Source: Salpingoeca rosetta
Lineage: Eukaryota > Protista > Choanoflagellata
Length of the DNA stretch: 64,000 nucleotides
Reading direction: 5' to 3'
Assembly (NCBI GenBank): GCA_033442325.1
Contig: JAWQFM010000003.1
Coordinates: 1,394,473-1,458,472, forward strand
In this document: piece by piece, positions 4,875-41,156 of the stretch
Layout of the letters: every line of letters begins with the position of its first letter
Position numbering within the stretch: position 1 is the first letter of the stretch
The notes under the pieces: model-generated
The model's input: only the letters and a program-made list of their open reading frames with translations
What the model was told of the DNA's origin: nothing
Databases searched by the model: none
Program-made: the position numbers and the translations under genes

Positions 4875-5869
4875 TCACAAGAAGGCGGGCATCTCACCCC
4901 GCTTGTCCAGGATGTGAACATACTTGCGCCTGCATGTACAGCACAAACCAAGGGTTAGAGGTTGCGCGCAACGTGGGTGCTCAGCGTGGAAAAAGGTGGA
5001 TATGCATGCCAGTACACAAGTTGGCGTGTGACAGTACAAGCAGGGGGTAAAAAATAAGACATACTTGTTTGGGCCGTCACGCGTGCGGGTAAACTTAACA
5101 AAGCCATCGGTCAGTGCATACAAAGTGTGGTCACGGCCCATGCCGACCTATAGCAACATGAAACAGACCAAAGGGGGGGGGGGGAGGGTGCGTGTGTGTG
5201 TGTGTGTGTGCGTGTGTGTGTGTGTGTGTGTGTGAGTGTGTGTGTGTGTGTGAGTGTGTGTGAGTGCGTGTGAATCAGTGTGTAAGTGGATGAGGAAGTG
5301 TGAAAGGAAGGCTTGAACGCGTGGTTGGATATATACGTACGTTGAGGCCCGGGTGGACGTCTGTTCCTCGCTGTCGCACAACAATGTTTCCAGAAACCAC
5401 AGCGCACCCTGCAAGTCGCAAATGCGCGACACAAGCAAGACGAACGCCATGGTGAAAAACAGTGAACAAGGCACACATACACAGACACACATAGACACAC
5501 ATAGACACACACAGACACACACAGACACACACAGACACAAAGATACACACATGCACACACACAAAGATACACACACACAAAGATACACGCATGCATGCAC
5601 ACACAAACACGCACACACACACACACAAAGATACACGCATGCACACGCACACACACATCTACATGCACACCTTCTGATTTCTTGATGCCGAGGCGCTTGC
5701 CGGCCGTTTTCCTGCCATTGTTGGTGGAGCCGCCAGCCTTCTTACTGGCAGCACGGGAAGCCACAAGCAAGCACGGCACACACGCTGCCTTTGCAACAGC
5801 AACAGCAGGTGCAGCAGCAGCAGCGCGAGCCGCCGTCAACCACCTTCCCCCCATCAAACACGCCATCAT
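4875..5869 (-). CDS. MRPL27: Mitochondrial ribosomal protein L27 (bL27m)
   Basis: Four exons: Ala/Arg-rich presequence then ASKKAGGSTNNGRKTAGKRLGIKKSEG / CAVVSGNIVVRQRGTDVHPGLN / VGMGRDHTLYALTDGFVKF / RKYVHILD...AFL*; classic L27 signature. Confidence 0.93.
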
Positions 5870-6075
5870 GTTGTTGCTTTTTCTCCTTTGTGGTGAAAAT
5901 TGACTTTGGATGCAAAGGCAAATTTGCCCTTTGCGCAGCGCAACAAACACGACCCGACGAAACAGCAAGCAAGAGAAGAGAGCGAGACGTGAGGCGGTTG
6001 GTGGCTGACACCACACAAGGACACACCTCGCGGACACACCCCAACACACACACACGCACACACACACACACACAC

Positions 6076-6112
<37 letters not shown>

Positions 6113-6223
6113 AACACAGGCAAGCATTCACGCCGAGGCAAGCGTGCGTAGTTTTCGACAAGCAAAGCCAGCAAAAGCCAGCAAGCAAAGCCAGCAAAGG
6201 GGAACACAACAGAAGTAAGGAAG

Positions 6224-7143
6224 ATGTTGCGCCGGCAAGTCTTGGACCGGCGATGCAGAGCTTCAACCAAGGACCCACACTCGGAAATACGGCTTGAAGA
6301 GCCCGCCACAACATTTGGACGCGGGTCACGGTGCAACGTCAACTTCGACAACCTGTACATCTCCCGCGTGCACGCCACCATTGAGAAACAGCAGGACGGA
6401 ACGTACCTGCTCAAGGTGGGCGGGCAAAACGGCGCCTGTGTGAACGACGTCGTGCAACGAGAGGTGAGCCCCGAAAATCACGCACGCGCACACGCACACG
6501 CACACTGCGAACTAACTCAAGTTGCAGGCAACTCTATCGACTCATCTACGCGTGTGTTGTGCGTGTGTGTGGTGTGTGTGGTTTTTTTTTTTGACACGTG
6601 TTGGTGGCTTGCCTTTATTGCTGTCCTCTGTGGATTCTCTGAACCTTGCTTGTGAAGCTGTTTTGCTGTGGCTTGTCGACCCATGATGGCCGGTCGACCA
6701 CGTTCTCATCCATGTTTCTGCGTGTCCGCATGACGCGTTTGCTCCTTTCATTGGCTGCTGCTGTGCCGCCAGGTGCAACTGCGGGATGGCGACGTGATTT
6801 CCTTTGGTGGCGTGCCCCCAAACCACGCGCCCGGCGCTTCTTGTCAGGCAGAAACGGACCTCAACTACATCTTCCAAACATCAAGCTCAAACCAGCAACA
6901 CCCAGTCAGTGTGCGCGCGTGTACGCGCGCGCGCGTGTGTGTGCACTTGTGTGTGTGTGTGTGTGTGTGTGTGTGCACTTGTGTGTGTGTGTGTGTGCAC
7001 TTGTGTGTGTGTGTGCACTTGTGTGTGTGTGTGTGCACTTGTAGCCCCCAACTCAAGATTCTTTGCCGCGGCACTGACATCAGCGTGGCTTGTCCTCGAT
7101 TGTTTGTGCCAGGGCACGCTTGACCCAGGGAACTGCAATAATC

Positions 7144-7232
<89 letters not shown>

Positions 7233-8520
7233 ACGCTGGCGTTGGCTGATGCAGAGCAACACCAACCAGAGGCCAAGTCTGCCACGACCAGCAACGAGCC
7301 AGCTGAAGTGGTCATTCTTGATGACGAAGAAGATGATGATGACGAGGATGACGACGACGGGAATGATGGTAGCGGCGATGGGGTGGAAGTGCAGTTGCAA
7401 GGGGAAGAGCGCAATGCGAAACGCTCCGCGTTGCAACGGGCGAAACGGTCCACAAGCGCCACCAACGGCACAAGCAACGAACGTGCCGCCACAGTGACGA
7501 TTGACCTCTCTGATGAGGACGACACTGATAAGGGCAGCCAAGACACAGCAGCGGCCGTCCACACCATCGACGACAACGACGACGACGATGGTGATGGTGA
7601 TGGTGGCAGCTCGAAACGGGCAAAAACCGCGGCATCGTCGCCGTCTGCTGCCGCCAAGCAGCTTGACATGACGTCGGAGTGCGAGTGTGCCATCTGCATG
7701 TCCATCATGGCGCTTCCCGCCACATTTGGTTGCGGCCACAGCTTCTGTCGCCTGTGCACCCTTGAACTCCTCAAATCGTACGTGTGTGTGTGTGTGTGTG
7801 TGTGTGTGTCTGTGTGGCTGTGTGTGGCTGTGTGTGTGTCTTCTTACCCTGTGCTGCGCGACGCTAGTGCTGCGTGACGCTCGTGCTGTGATCACCACAT
7901 CCCCTCTCCCGACCTCAATCACCGACACCTCCCCCCCCCCCCCAAACACACACACACAAACCGCACCCACCAGCCCGAACGCGCGGTGTCCGCACTGCCG
8001 GCAGCCCGTGAAGCAGGTGCTTGAGCGCAGCTTCATGGTGGAGAGCGTCATTGAGCGTCTCATGGCCACCAAGCCCGACGACGACGAAGCCAAGATCGAC
8101 TGGAAGGAGCGCGTGCAGGCTGCAAAGTCGCTGCCCGCGCCAGCCGTTTGCACACGCGCTTCACGCTCGGCGGGGATGTACAGCGGCGGCTATGGTGGCG
8201 AGTACGTGCAGGCCATGCTGCACCGGGTTGGCGCGGCGGCAAATGCGCTGGGCCAACACGTGATGGCGTTTCCCGGTCATGCTGCCCAACACCACCAGCC
8301 CCATTACCACCCACTACCACCACCGCCTCAACCGCAGCAACAGCAACAGCAACAACAACAACAACAACAGCAGCCACGAACGTCTGGGCACTGGAAGTTC
8401 TCGTATGCGACAAACGGGCGGGCGATATGCCGCAAGTGCTATCAGAACATCCCCGTGCGATCCGTCCGCGTCGGCCATATCAGCGGGGCAACAACACGTG
8501 CGTACGCCGTTGTTTCTTTG

Positions 8521-8565
<45 letters not shown>

Positions 8566-8938
8566 CGTGTGCGTGTGCGTGTGCGTGTGCGTGTGCGTGT
8601 GCGTGTGCGTGTGCGTGTGCGTGTGCGTGTGCGTGTGTGTGTGGCGACTCTCACCCTTGCCCGTTGCGCATGTCCTGAGCAACGCCTCCCACCCTCTCCC
8701 GACTCCTTGCTCATGAATTGGACGTGCCACTTGTGCTACTCGACAGGGTATTTTCATCTGCATTGTGGCGTTCACTTGATGATGCAGCTGCGACTGCAGC
8801 CAGGGCCACAACAACTGGCTGCCCTGACACAAAGCGATCAGGTGCGTGTGGTTGTACGTTTGTGTATGCTGTGTGCGTTACGTGTCACGTGCGTGTGCGT
8901 GCTCTGTGTGCGTGTGTGTGTGTGTGTGCGTGTGCGTG

Positions 8939-9000
<62 letters not shown>

Positions 9001-9173
9001 CGTGTGTGTGTGTGTGTGTGTGTGCGACGTGTGTTATGTGTGTCCATTCACTGCACACTGCACACTGTACGCGATGCCTCATCCCAGGCCACCCTTTGCC
9101 CAAAACCCCGTTCACTCACCCAAACCATTCGCGTGTGCTCTGACAGCGCAACGTCCAAGATCTGTTCCGATGA
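6224..9173 (+). CDS. FHA + RING + PARP-type zinc finger protein (RNF8/CHFR-like E3 ubiquitin ligase)
   Basis: About 6 exons. FHA: TTFGRG..C......ISRVHA..NG..VN / LRDGDVISFG. RING C3HC4: CAIC..CGHSFC..C / CPHCR. C-terminal YATNGRAICRKC..IP..SVRVG / YFHLHC. Last exon RNVQDLFR* ends at 9173. Confidence 0.85.
7143..7232 (+). repeat. Pure (CAA)n repeat encoding ~30 Gln inside the FHA-RING gene
   Basis: Uninterrupted CAA run in the frame continuous with the RING exon. Confidence 0.85.
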
Positions 9174-9542
9174 GTGCATGGCGTCCTGCGACAAGAGGCA
9201 CGCCGCATCCCCGCTCGCTGCCTCTGTCGCTGTCTCGTCTTGGTTCCTGTAATGCTGCTGTAATGTAAACTTGATTGACTCTGGTGTTTGTTTCGGGCGT
9301 GTAAACTAAAGTGGGCGGCTGGCGCTACACCGCTTCCCTCCTCCTCCTCCTCCTCCTTCTTCGCCGCTTGCCTGCTCCATGTTTGTTTTTGTTCTTGTTT
9401 CTCCGACTACGATGACTTGTAAACGTATCAACACTTGTGTGCTAGTCGGCATCAGTGGACGAATGGATGTGTGTGTGTGTGTGAGTGTGTGTGAATGAGT
9501 GATTTGCCATCCCAATTGGTTTCATGGTCCTTCCACCTTCCA

Positions 9543-9645
<103 letters not shown>

Positions 9646-9882
9646 CACACACCACCCAAGAAACAAAGTCCAGATCAGATCATGGCGGGTGGTAAAATTT
9701 GCTGCGATGTTCCTAATTTTCATCAATCCACAACTCTCAACGACTTCTTGGCATTCAAATCAACAAGAAGAACAACACCAACAAAGACGCCACCAACAAA
9801 AGGACACCCTTCCCTTTCTGTGCCACACACACCCCTTCAGAAGATACAGAGAGCCAAGCACAATCAAGCGAGCAAGGGGAGG

Positions 9883-10253
9883 ATGGTGGCGTTGGTGCGC
9901 GCCTTGTACGATTATGCAGGCGATCCTTCAAGGTAACAACACAACACCCCAATGCACGCGCAGCTTAGCCAATGTTGCATGCGACCGACCAACACAACAA
10001 ACAATGCAGCGGCTTGTGGTCATGTTTGTGTTCTGTGTCTGCTTCGTTTTGGCCGGGTGTTGTCCTTCCGTTTTGACGCATGGACTTCCTGTGTTGACCC
10101 CTTTTGCCCTGCAACTGACCTTGTCTTCCCGCTCTCACACGTTTGTCGTTCCTGCCCATATGCGCCACCGACATCCCATTCCAACCTCTACTTTGTCGTA
10201 TCCGCCTTTTGCTGACGCCCATGTGCCTCCTCCTCCTCCTCCTCCTCCTCCTC

Positions 10254-38525: not shown

Positions 38526-38837
38526 TCAGCACTGCCGCTGTTGCTGTGTTGTTGCAAGGGAAAATAAACCCACACTGTTTATGTTTGGTAAATTGGAGTT
38601 TGCCACAGCTTTGTGTCTCTGTGTAAAGTGAACACCCGCTCTGCGTAGTGTGCATGTGCCACCTGCGCTCTGCAGGTTTGTGCCTTTTTCTTTCCGTGCA
38701 CAAGGAACAACACATCTCCGACCACATCTCAACTTGCACGTGAGAAGGATGAAGAGAAGGATGATGAAGAGATGGGGTTACTGTGGTGGTGCTGGAGGGT
38801 GCATGGTTTTGTTGTTGATGTCGTCGTTGTTGTTGAG

Positions 38838-38969
38838 CTCTTTTTTGTCTTGTGCGTGCGTGCGTGCGTGCCTCATCTCTGGTCTCACACACACCCCGTA
38901 CTCACATACCCCGTACTCACGCACACCAACTCTCACGTTCACACCAACCGCACACACCAACTGACGCAG
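38838..38969 (+). promoter_or_regulatory. Candidate TOP/TCT-like pyrimidine start plus 5'UTR intron of RPS2
   Basis: CTCTTTTTTGTCTT (38838-38851), GTGCGT donor at 38852, branch-like CTGAC and CAG ending 38969, two nt before the ATG. Confidence 0.5.
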
Positions 38970-38971
38970 CA

Positions 38972-39638
38972 ATGGCGGACAAGCAACCGACCGGTGAAAG
39001 CAGTGGTCGCGGCCGCGGCGAGGGCCGTGGTGGCGAGGGCCGTGGCCGTGGTGGCGGTCGTGGTGGTGGCCGTGGTGGTGGCCGTGGCCGCGAGGAGCGC
39101 AAGGAGTGGAAGCCCGTGACCAAGCTGGGCCGCCTCGTCAAGGAGCGCCGCATCAAGTCCATCGAGGAGATCTACCAGCACTCCCTGTCCATCAAGGAGC
39201 CCGAGATCATCGACTTCTTCTTCGGCGACTCTCTGCAGGACGAGGTCCTCAAGATCACCCCCGTGCAGAAGCAGACCACCGCTGGTCAGCGCACCCGCTT
39301 CAAGGCCTTTGTTGCCCTCGGCGACAGCAACGGTCACCTTGGCCTCGGCGTCAAGTGCTCCAAGGAGGTTGCCGGCGCCATCCGTGGCGCCCTCCTCTGC
39401 GCCAAGATGAGCCTCCTCCCCGTGCGTCGTGGTTATTGGGGTAACATGCTTGGTGATCCCCACACCGTGCCCATGAAGACCACCGGTGTCTGCGGTAGCG
39501 TCACTGTGCGTCTCATCCCCGCGCCTCGCGGTGCCGGTATTGTTGCCGCCCCTACCCCCAAGAAGCTGCTCCAGCTCGCCGGTATCGACGACTGCTACAC
39601 GGCTTCCCGTGGCCAGACCGCCACCCTCGGCAACTTTG
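38972..39638 (+). CDS. RPS2: 40S ribosomal protein S2 (uS5), first coding exon; 3' exon not visible (probably in the gap)
   Basis: RGG-rich N-terminus, [59 protein letters not shown] then GTACGT donor at 39639; strongly biased codons. Confidence 0.97.
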
Positions 39639-39895
39639 GTACGTCCTTTAAATGACACACGTGTGCGCTGCCGTTGCGTGTGTTGTGTTTGCGTTTGGTT
39701 GTTGGTGAGAGGCAAGACCCAATGTACACGCGAAGCAACAACAGCTCTGTTGCTTTCTTTGCATCGGGTCCGTGCAGCACAACACGCACTTGTTCTCTCC
39801 AATCTTCTCCTCTCTCCTATCCTCTCTCCTCTTTCCTCTCCCTGTCTCCTCTTTCTCTCTTCTCTCTCTTCCTTTTTATTTGGACTCTTCTGTTT

Positions 39896-39999
39896 CTGGG
39901 ATGATATCAAATCTTTAACCCAACTCTCTGATCTCATGCACGACAAAGTTGTGCTTTTGTGATGAGCTTTCAAGTTCTCACGACAGTCTACTGAGAAAT
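39896..39999 (+). ncRNA. Box C/D snoRNA copy 1 (dual guide; LSU rRNA, yeast-equivalent 2948 and C2959)
   Basis: C-like AUGAUAU 39901, D' CUGA 39928-39931, C' GUGAUGA 39959-39965, D CUGA 39991-39994, terminal stem CUGUUUCU/AGAAAUAG; guides AACCCAACUC and UCUCACGACAGUCUA are antisense to conserved LSU GAGCUGGGUUUAGACCGUCGUGAGA. Confidence 0.9.
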
Positions 40000-40079
40000 A
40001 GCAGTGTCCTCCTCTTCTCTTGTGTCTGATCCCGTCTCTTCCGTCTCTGCTCTCCCCTTTGTTTTTCCTTCCCCCCCCC

Positions 40080-40128
<49 letters not shown>

Positions 40129-40130
<2 letters not shown>

Positions 40131-40232
40131 GGGATGATGACCAAATTTTAACCCAACTCATTCTGATTTATCGCAACAAAGTTGCACCCTGTGATGAGTA
40201 TCTTTCCAACTCACGACAGTCTACTGAGAACA
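40129..40232 (+). ncRNA. Box C/D snoRNA copy 2 (dual guide; yeast-equivalent A2946 and C2959)
   Basis: Perfect C AUGAUGA 40134-40140, D' CUGA 40163-40166, C' GUGAUGA 40191-40197, D CUGA 40224-40227; guides AACCCAACUCAUU and CUCACGACAGUCUA. Confidence 0.92.
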
Positions 40233-40372
40233 GTAGCTCTCGTCGCACACGCGCCCTTTTTGTTGCTGTTGTATCTTCTGATGTGTATTTGTTTCCCCTT
40301 GACTTCCCCCGCCACGTACCATGCATGCTTGGCGGCCTTTGCTCGTCGTCTCTCGTTGCTCGTTCTTGTTGG

Positions 40373-40421
<49 letters not shown>

Positions 40422-40458
40422 GTCTCTCTCTTTCTTCACTTGTGCTGTGGTCGCAGTT

Positions 40459-40537
40459 CTGGGATGATTATCAAATCTTTAACCCAACTCTCTGATCCTC
40501 ATGCACGACAAGTTGTGCTTTTTGTGATGAGCTTTCA
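40459..40537 (+). ncRNA. Box C/D snoRNA copy 3 (near-identical to copy 1, truncated by gap)
   Basis: AUGAUUA 40464, same D' guide with CUGA 40492-40495, C' GUGAUGA 40524-40530, then Ns; upstream flank differs from copy 1. Confidence 0.75.
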
Positions 40538-41156
40538 NNNNNNNNNNNNNNNNNNNNNNNNNNNNNNNNNNNNNNNNNNNNNNNNNNNNNNNNNNNNNNN
40601 NNNNNNNNNNNNNNNNNNNNNNNNNNNNNNNNNNNNNNNNNNNNNNNNNNNNNNNNNNNNNNNNNNNNNNNNNNNNNNNNNNNNNNNNNNNNNNNNNNNN
40701 NNNNNNNNNNNNNNNNNNNNNNNNNNNNNNNNNNNNNNNNNNNNNNNNNNNNNNNNNNNNNNNNNNNNNNNNNNNNNNNNNNNNNNNNNNNNNNNNNNNN
40801 NNNNNNNNNNNNNNNNNNNNNNNNNNNNNNNNNNNNNNNNNNNNNNNNNNNNNNNNNNNNNNNNNNNNNNNNNNNNNNNNNNNNNNNNNNNNNNNNNNNN
40901 NNNNNNNNNNNNNNNNNNNNNNNNNNNNNNNNNNNNNNNNNNNNNNNNNNNNNNNNNNNNNNNNNNNNNNNNNNNNNNNNNNNNNNNNNNNNNNNNNNNN
41001 NNNNNNNNNNNNNNNNNNNNNNNNNNNNNNNNNNNNNNNNNNNNNNNNNNNNNNNNNNNNNNNNNNNNNNNNNNNNNNNNNNNNNNNNNNNNNNNNNNNN
41101 NNNNNNNNNNNNNNNNNNNNNNNNNNNNNNNNNNNNNNNNNNNNNNNNNNNNNNNN
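40538..41156. other. Assembly gap (N run), probably hiding the RPS2 3' exon
   Basis: Run of N; the expected RPS2 C-terminus is absent from visible sequence. Confidence 0.95.

Follow-up and report, generated by a model that had tools for sequence, protein, structure and literature searches.

The window analysed here, that is, the whole stretch of 64,000 nucleotides from Salpingoeca rosetta, contains within positions 39892-40537 three related box C/D snoRNA units on the plus strand, all of them in the sense orientation of a uS5/RPS2 gene, within the one intron that interrupts its coding part (Table 1). Translation of the exon 1 open reading frame yields uS5, with matches to PF00333 and PF03719 and 70-85% identity. 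The intron can be followed downstream of its 5' splice site as far as an assembly gap, which in the window also hides the D guide and D box of the third unit. Exon 2 was not found downstream of this gap in the window, and the window also lacks the 3'-UTR consensus that reads give for the second expressed copy of uS5.

A second, nearly identical uS5 locus lies on contig C14 (G000:C14:794000-801000, L009), where the gene is free of gaps. Its intron is 1104 nt long and holds the same three units, copy 3 being identical to copy 1 and copy 2 being 100% identical to its counterpart in the window. Against window positions 38700-40537, coding exon 1 of the C14 gene is 100% identical and the introns differ mostly in microsatellite length; the paralogues differ in the 5' flank and 5'-UTR exon and, as judged from read ends, in the 3' UTR. 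Because the two loci, on C3 and C14, are so alike, their comparison is uninformative on selection acting on the snoRNAs, and this line of evidence was dropped. Within a stretch of 76 nt, four single-base indels distinguish window copy 3 (40461-40530) from the C14 copy, and they are situated beside the gap and outside the boxes and guides; none of the four is listed among the RNA reads on the C14 locus, and they may be low-quality sequence or errors at a contig end.

Table 1. Positions of the snoRNA units, the host gene and the predicted rRNA target sites (window coordinates unless another contig or locus is named; LSU, large-subunit rRNA numbering).
Feature	Position	Strand	Remarks
uS5/RPS2 exon 1, coding part	38972..39638	+	ends ...GNF; 5' splice site G|GTACGT
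Host intron, visible part	39639..40537	+	remainder and exon 2 in N run
snoRNA copy 1	39892..39999	+	predicted LSU sites: U3838 for D', C3849 for D
Copy 1 terminal stem	39892-39896 with 39995-39999	+	
Copy 1 C box	39898-39904	+	
Copy 1 D' guide; D' box	39917-39927; 39928-39931	+	
Copy 1 hairpin; C' box	39938-39954; 39959-39965	+	
Copy 1 D guide; D box	39976-39990; 39991-39994	+	
snoRNA copy 2	about 40127..40231	+	predicted LSU sites: A3836 for D' (12 bp), C3849 for D
Copy 2 C box	40131-40137	+	AUGAUGA also readable 3 nt further on
Copy 2 D' guide; D' box	40150-40162; 40163-40166	+	guide holds the extra AU
Copy 2 hairpin; C' box	40173-40185; 40191-40197	+	
Copy 2 D guide; D box	40210-40223; 40224-40227	+	
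snoRNA copy 3	40454..40537	+	5' three quarters only; ended by N run
Copy 3 5' stem strand; C box	40454-40459; 40461-40467	+	
Copy 3 D' guide; D' box	40481-40491; 40492-40495	+	
Copy 3 hairpin; C' box	40503-40518; 40524-40530	+	
N run, 619 N	40538..41156		hides copy 3 3' end, rest of intron, exon 2 and uS5 3' UTR
Complete copy 3 at C14	L009 3265-3366	-	
D' guide, copies 1 and 3, best site	LSU U3838		10 Watson-Crick pairs, positions 2-11
D' guide, copy 2, best site	LSU A3836		12 pairs, positions 2-13, one G.U
D guide, all copies, best site	LSU C3849		14-15 pairs, one A:C at position 6
T-bearing rDNA segment	L001 1500-1552 (G000:C3:1882829-1882856)	-	
T-bearing rDNA segment	G000:C8:2022597-2022624		

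Expression of the host gene

Reads from one RNA-seq run, an ordinary paired 101-nt transcriptome library, were aligned to the C14 uS5 locus (2,051 letters). Exon 1 is joined exactly to exon 2 in 9205 spliced reads, with GT..AG on the gene strand, and the exons are covered at a depth of 5,000-10,000, while depth over the intron is flat at 9-31, the level of pre-mRNA. The reads also show distinct 5'-UTR exons for the two uS5 paralogues, both of which carry a 5'-UTR intron, and it follows that both genes are expressed. In this one standard run there is no snoRNA-shaped peak over the intron and no piling up of read starts or ends at the snoRNA borders; because a paired 101-nt library is ill-suited to RNAs of ~100 nt, this neither shows nor excludes mature snoRNAs. 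Two further features of the reads concern the exons. A 26-nt joint that "goes back" occurs in 22 RNA reads in the part of uS5 coding for the Arg-Gly repeat (L009 4702-4727), and at two exon positions (L009 4726 and 2947) about 72-75% of the reads differ from the assembly; together, the joint and the mismatching positions point to reads and an assembly that differ in strain or copy.

Anatomy of the snoRNA units

Each unit is built as a box C/D snoRNA with two guides, and the features expected of this RNA class, namely C and D boxes, a terminal stem, D' and C' boxes, and guides of at least 10 nt whose position 5 falls on known modification sites, are found in them. The C box reads GGGAUGA in all copies, with G instead of U at position 2 of the RUGAUGA consensus, and the D' box (CUGA) and C' box (GUGAUGA) are invariant and separated by a hairpin of 5-7 bp. 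The D box is CUGA in copies 1 and 2 and in copy 3 of the C14 locus. Copies 1 and 2, which are 78% identical, carry the same D guide, CUCACGACAGUCUA, whereas there are two forms of D' guide: copies 1 and 3 have AACCCAACUCU, and copy 2 has AACCCAACUCAUU. A preliminary description of the locus had reported three related C/D snoRNAs of ~100 nt with a D guide common to copies 1 and 2 and a D' guide that sets copy 2 apart from copies 1 and 3; the boxes, guides and stems on the plus strand confirm this, and the guide letters it gave are exact.

Copy 1 has a terminal stem of 5 bp, copy 3 one of 6-8 bp and copy 2 a weak one of 3+2 bp; the stem sequences differ among copies and yet pair (GUUUC/GAAAU in copy 1, CAGUUC/GAACUG in copy 3). 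[quoted passage not shown] Folding of copy 1 returns the terminal stem together with a 7-bp internal hairpin (z -2.0), and C14 copy 3 folds with a perfect 6-bp terminal stem that extends to 8 bp (z -4.1). A candidate H/ACA snoRNA in the 5' part of the intron was rejected, its fold being no better than those of shuffled sequences (z -0.4).

Predicted targets in the large-subunit rRNA

Each guide was slid exhaustively along the rDNA unit of the same genome, with the LSU numbered from its Rfam-defined 5' end; the target region reads GAGTTGGGTTTAGACCGTCGTGAG at both rDNA loci. We take the best sites, U3838, A3836 and C3849 (Table 1), to be the equivalents of yeast C2948, A2946 and C2959, respectively, by alignment with the yeast and E. 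coli sequences; yeast C2948 corresponds to E. coli C2579, beside the peptidyl-transferase centre. The site equivalences are consistent with a published table of modification sites (PMC8817022). On the rRNA, the D' and D duplexes abut (3844|3845). The inserted A of copy 2 pairs with an rRNA U and the following U with G (U.G). In both rDNA copies the D target is followed by C, so that the D guide is mismatched there and a second C-to-U change in the rRNA is not indicated.

Where yeast has C2948 and E. coli has C2579, the LSU rDNA of this genome carries T, within the otherwise universal segment GAGCUGGGUUUAGA; C is expected at this site in other organisms. At the two uS5 loci, all six guide copies carry the A that matches this rRNA U, whereas every homologue recovered from other organisms carries G, a case of guide-target co-variation. 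Two other potential sites of the D guide were considered and rejected, the first of them as the main target. This one, at LSU C2804, forms 10 bp with two G.U pairs and is shorter, the guide being conserved as far as Dictyostelium; the other, a perfect 14-mer match on contig C10, lies in GC-rich, coding-like sequence, and ~0.4 such matches are expected by chance.

Searched in silico against the genome's own rDNA, the targets agree with earlier proposals that the D guide is directed to the C2959 equivalent (here with an A:C mismatch at position 6), that the D' guide of copy 2 is directed to the A2946 equivalent, and that each RNA would clamp two adjacent rRNA segments, the predicted pairing segments being contiguous. 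The proposal that copies 1 and 3 target C2948 holds for the position, the 2948 equivalent being their best site, but the base to be modified is U, not C.

Rfam similarity and other guides in the genome

At gathering thresholds, Rfam gives no match over the whole window. Below threshold, two families recognise the units. RF01566 (DdR16) scores 35.9, 35.9 and 32.0 bits in the locus, short of its threshold of 70, with E 0.001 for copy 1 and E 0.007 for copy 2 (32 bits) and an alignment that spans both guides; in a whole-genome search its scores are 26.9 and 22.2 bits. RF00328 (snoZ161_228, the plant Z161/Z228 family of clan CL00056) reaches 37 bits (E 3.5e-5) against a threshold of 45, and this match covers only the half from C' to D and the downstream spacer. 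Copies 1 and 3 have the layout of DdR16, with D' on 2948, D on 2959 and A at position 6, and in copy 2 the D' register is shifted by 2. The preliminary description had named SNORD29- and snR69-type families for an Rfam check; these gave no match in the locus at E <= 10, and the similarity that does appear is the sub-threshold one to DdR16 and Z161/Z228. Copy 2 would work like U29 but is not a member of the SNORD29/snR71 family.

Genome-wide pattern searches in the right registers recovered these six copies as the only ones with snoRNA anatomy and no other convincing guide, and genome searches with SNORD29 (RF00070) and DdR16 (RF01566) added none; a perfectly paired guide for C3849 was not found in the genome. 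The pattern matches L013-L027, L044-L046, L048 and L049 were rejected for want of box C/D anatomy, L017 alone among them being kept as a weak candidate. In L017 (G000:C29:296170-296620, plus), AGTGATGA stands about 100 nt upstream of a guide that ends ...CACGACGGTCG before CTGA and whose position 5 would fall on the C that follows the C2959 equivalent; since other snoRNA features and an Rfam match are lacking, it is probably a chance occurrence. The best whole-genome match of RF00070 (26.5 bits) belongs to a separate snoRNA with a guide for another part of the LSU. This box C/D snoRNA (G000:C5:950114-950190, minus; L055 1501-1577), which came up as a weak SNORD29 match, is well formed and has a long terminal stem; the D guide can pair with the LSU segment GUGAAGAAAUUCAA, which we take to be the U18/snR58 region of yeast.

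One further locus bears on the A3836 site. A box C/D snoRNA with a single guide is possible in a 120-nt intron of a myosin motor gene (L047, G000:C21:581720-582140, minus). There, a stretch able to form 12 bp in the A3836 register (G000:C21:581921-581934, minus) stands directly before CUGA and 23 nt from the 3' splice site, with GUGAUGG near the 5' splice site, about 80 nt upstream of the guide. Its C box is defective, and neither a C' box, a second rRNA target nor an Rfam match was found for it, so L047 ranks as a weak extra candidate guide for A3836. The idea that a single family covers all three neighbouring sites is accordingly upheld by the in silico targets but qualified by this candidate.

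Homologues and the origin of copy 2

A Logan contig from a related organism (L050) encodes a uS5 that is 85% identical and has an intron at the same codon, in which a single snoRNA resides. Between L050 and the copies described here only the boxes and the two guides can be aligned, the remaining intron being unalignable; the C box of L050 is AGGAUGA, and the D' guide, which has G at position 5, follows the 2948 register. Since the relative has one copy and that copy is in the 2948 register, the single-register state is ancestral in the lineage and copy 2 is derived, by duplication and an AU insertion beside the D' box. The suggestion that the locus captures neofunctionalisation of a guide in the act is supported in so far as copy 2 is the derived paralogue and is predicted to be retargeted, but the novelty claimed for it was overstated, because precedents exist (see below). 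The uS5 proteins P0007 and P0008 come from intronless contigs and add no further relatives.

Metagenome contigs were scanned once for the two-guide layout, and 16 loci were returned (L028-L043). In these and in L050, the guide order and the D guide are as in the window copies. The D' guide is in the 2948 register in half of the metagenomic loci (L029, L033, L035, L037, L038, L040, L041 and L042), as in L050, and in the 2946 register in the other eight (L028, L030, L031, L032, L034, L036, L039 and L043), which form two unrelated-looking groups; in one of these groups the D' box would be UUGA. No cluster mixing the two registers was found among the 16 loci and L050. L041 also lies in a uS5 gene, in another intron. 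L030, L035 and L029 are clustered with other snoRNA-like units (weak DdR13, snR56, SNORD33, U30 and SNORA16 matches), which places them in multi-snoRNA loci of eukaryotes, and in L034 and L043 the units recur head to tail about every 94-108 nt.

Opposite the C2960 equivalent, guide position 6 (window 39985 and 40218) is occupied by A in this genome, in Dictyostelium and in 13 of the 16 metagenomic loci, and by U in the relative (L050 1121); G stands there in a single tandem-array group and in plants alone. Position 6 is a widely kept non-Watson-Crick position adjoining the predicted methylation site. The units are not a product of chance, given that boxes and guides are invariant in the relative and the 16 metagenomic loci and that the sub-threshold Rfam matches are non-random. 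Selection on the guides is indicated by the confinement of alignable intron sequence to boxes and guides in L050, by the pairing of the bases inserted in copy 2, by the G/A difference that follows the rRNA, and by terminal stems that pair in spite of their differing sequences.

Interpretation and alternative explanations

The reading we favour, with a probability of about 0.7, is that the coding intron of uS5/RPS2, a highly expressed gene of Salpingoeca rosetta, houses a family of dual-guide box C/D snoRNAs serving three sites, one member of which, copy 2, has been re-aimed. The snoRNAs would be cut and trimmed from the spliced uS5 intron to give stable RNAs and would assemble with Snu13, Nop56, Nop58 and fibrillarin, whereupon the two guides of each RNA would pair co-operatively with one continuous ~25-nt stretch of LSU rRNA bordering the peptidyl-transferase centre. 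The shared D guide would set position 5 on C3849 (yeast C2959), tolerating the A:C at position 6; in copies 1 and 3, position 5 of the D' guide would fall on U3838 (yeast C2948). Copy 2 would have arisen by duplication and by insertion of AU directly upstream of the D' box, which would slide the register by two onto A3836 (yeast A2946) and add two pairs to the duplex; three methylations are predicted in all. Points that weigh against this reading are the flat intron coverage in the RNA-seq run, the GGGAUGA form of the C box, the weak terminal stem of copy 2, the A:C mismatch beside the D target and the sub-threshold Rfam scores.

Copy 2 might be redundant or drifting and kept only for its D guide, its shifted D' guide being of no use and A3836 being methylated by another snoRNA or not at all. 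It has the weakest terminal stem of the copies, and L047 offers a 12-bp guide in the A3836 register before CUGA with GUGAUGG upstream; however, L047 is itself impaired by its defective C box and its lack of a C' box, a second target and an Rfam match, and copy 2 retains canonical D' and C' boxes, inserted bases that pair with the rRNA (A-U, U.G) and complete identity at both loci. Because A2946 is methylated in yeast, human, Arabidopsis and Dictyostelium (PMC8817022), a guide for its equivalent is also to be expected, and we regard a redundant copy 2 as unlikely. Alternatively, the D guide might direct no methylation on account of its A:C mismatch and instead serve as an accessory anchor beside the D' target or as a chaperone of rRNA folding. 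The mismatch at position 6 faces a C in both rDNA copies, the relative has U there, which is also unpaired with C, and yeast snR69, snR71 and snR73 keep extra complementarity flanking their sites, pairing that aids methylation (PMC3116282). In Dictyostelium, however, the same A/C guide is the only one assigned to the detected Cm3292 (PMC8817022); moreover, a duplex of 14-15 bp in exact +5 register is conserved across very distant lineages, and the genome holds no perfectly paired C3849 guide. We judge a purely accessory role to be quite improbable.

It is scarcely credible that the units are unexpressed intronic relics, that is, snoRNA pseudogenes. This would accord with the missing snoRNA-shaped peak in one RNA-seq run, from a library ill-suited to ~100-nt RNAs, and with the sub-threshold level of every Rfam score, but it is contradicted by boxes and guides that stay invariant across the genome, the relative and the metagenomic homologues while all else diverges, by compensatory changes in the terminal stems, and by a guide that co-varies with a change in the genome's own rRNA. 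The three snoRNAs are real and probably functional. A more ambitious version of the favoured reading joins several of these observations: a near-universal C (yeast C2948) would have become U and all guide copies would have followed from G to A; a U29/snR71-type gene would have been lost, leaving the Am2946-type site to be served only by the retargeted paralogue; and the position 6 pair would be a selected feature and not a tolerated defect, since a non-Watson-Crick pair is kept there across distant eukaryotes. We offer this combined scenario as a speculation whose parts are rather doubtful in conjunction.

Implications

If the favoured reading is correct, the locus would provide a clean eukaryotic case in which tandem duplication followed by a small indel gave a guide a new aim, a relative having kept the unshifted form. 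The guide also varies together with its rRNA target. The homologues show that the 2948/2959 dual guide of Dictyostelium is widespread among eukaryotes and not specific to amoebae. Three neighbouring methylations in a genetically tractable choanoflagellate would also offer a test of the effects of register, mismatches and neighbouring pairing. The general understanding of how snoRNAs work is left unchanged, as the kind of RNA, the two-segment architecture and the evolutionary mode are all known already.

Comparison with known guide systems

Our search of the literature found nothing on choanoflagellate snoRNAs, and the closest known counterparts are CD15 and CD23 of Dictyostelium (RF01566). In CD15, box D is directed to 26S C3292 and box D' to C3281, 11 nt apart (Diesend et al. 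2022, PMC8817022). CD23 is a paralogue that shares the D guide and for which the A/C pair at position 6 was noted, and both RNAs were probed with the same oligonucleotide, complementary to that shared guide; RiboMeth-seq revealed all of Am3279, Cm3281 and Cm3292 (PMC8817022). The units described here have this same layout, with a D' guide to the GAGCUGGGUU segment in the 2948 register and a D guide CUCACGACAGUCU that places A opposite C at position 6. Given this precedent, neither a 2948+2959 dual guide nor the position 6 mismatch is new, and predicted 2946+2959 dual guides already exist in other eukaryotes represented by metagenomic loci. Three differences stand out: the CD15 and CD23 genes are intergenic, whereas the present units lie in a uS5 intron; D' guide position 5 is A here and G in CD15/CD23, because the rRNA base here is U; and the A2946 equivalent is served in Dictyostelium by the unrelated CD11a/b, but here would be served by copy 2, a paralogue of the same family.

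In other lineages the same sites, Am2946, Cm2948 and Cm2959, are served by yeast snR71, snR69 and snR73 and, in vertebrates, by U29 (SNORD29) and U35 (SNORD35) (PMC8817022). The yeast, vertebrate and plant guides are separate single-site genes and not one family and, so far as the Rfam consensus shows, carry at position 6 a G where the units here have A. The C2959 guide of plant Z161/Z228 (RF00328) matches the D guide here but sits at the D' position. The flanking complementarity of the yeast guides would fit either descent from, or convergence on, pairing with two segments. Pairing of D and D' guides with neighbouring rRNA segments is also found in U24-type guides (yeast C1437 and C1449/G1450; Dictyostelium CD19, 12 nt apart), which belong to an unrelated family and act on a different rRNA region (PMC8817022, Table S7). 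For the shift in register itself, the nearest parallel is the "target migration" of sR56 and sR57 in Pyrobaculum, paralogous dual guides whose cores are offset by 2 nt through indels, with a 2-nt shift in target (PMC6009581); these RNAs are archaeal, have other targets and are not intronic, but the indel mechanism is the same as that which distinguishes copy 1 from copy 2.
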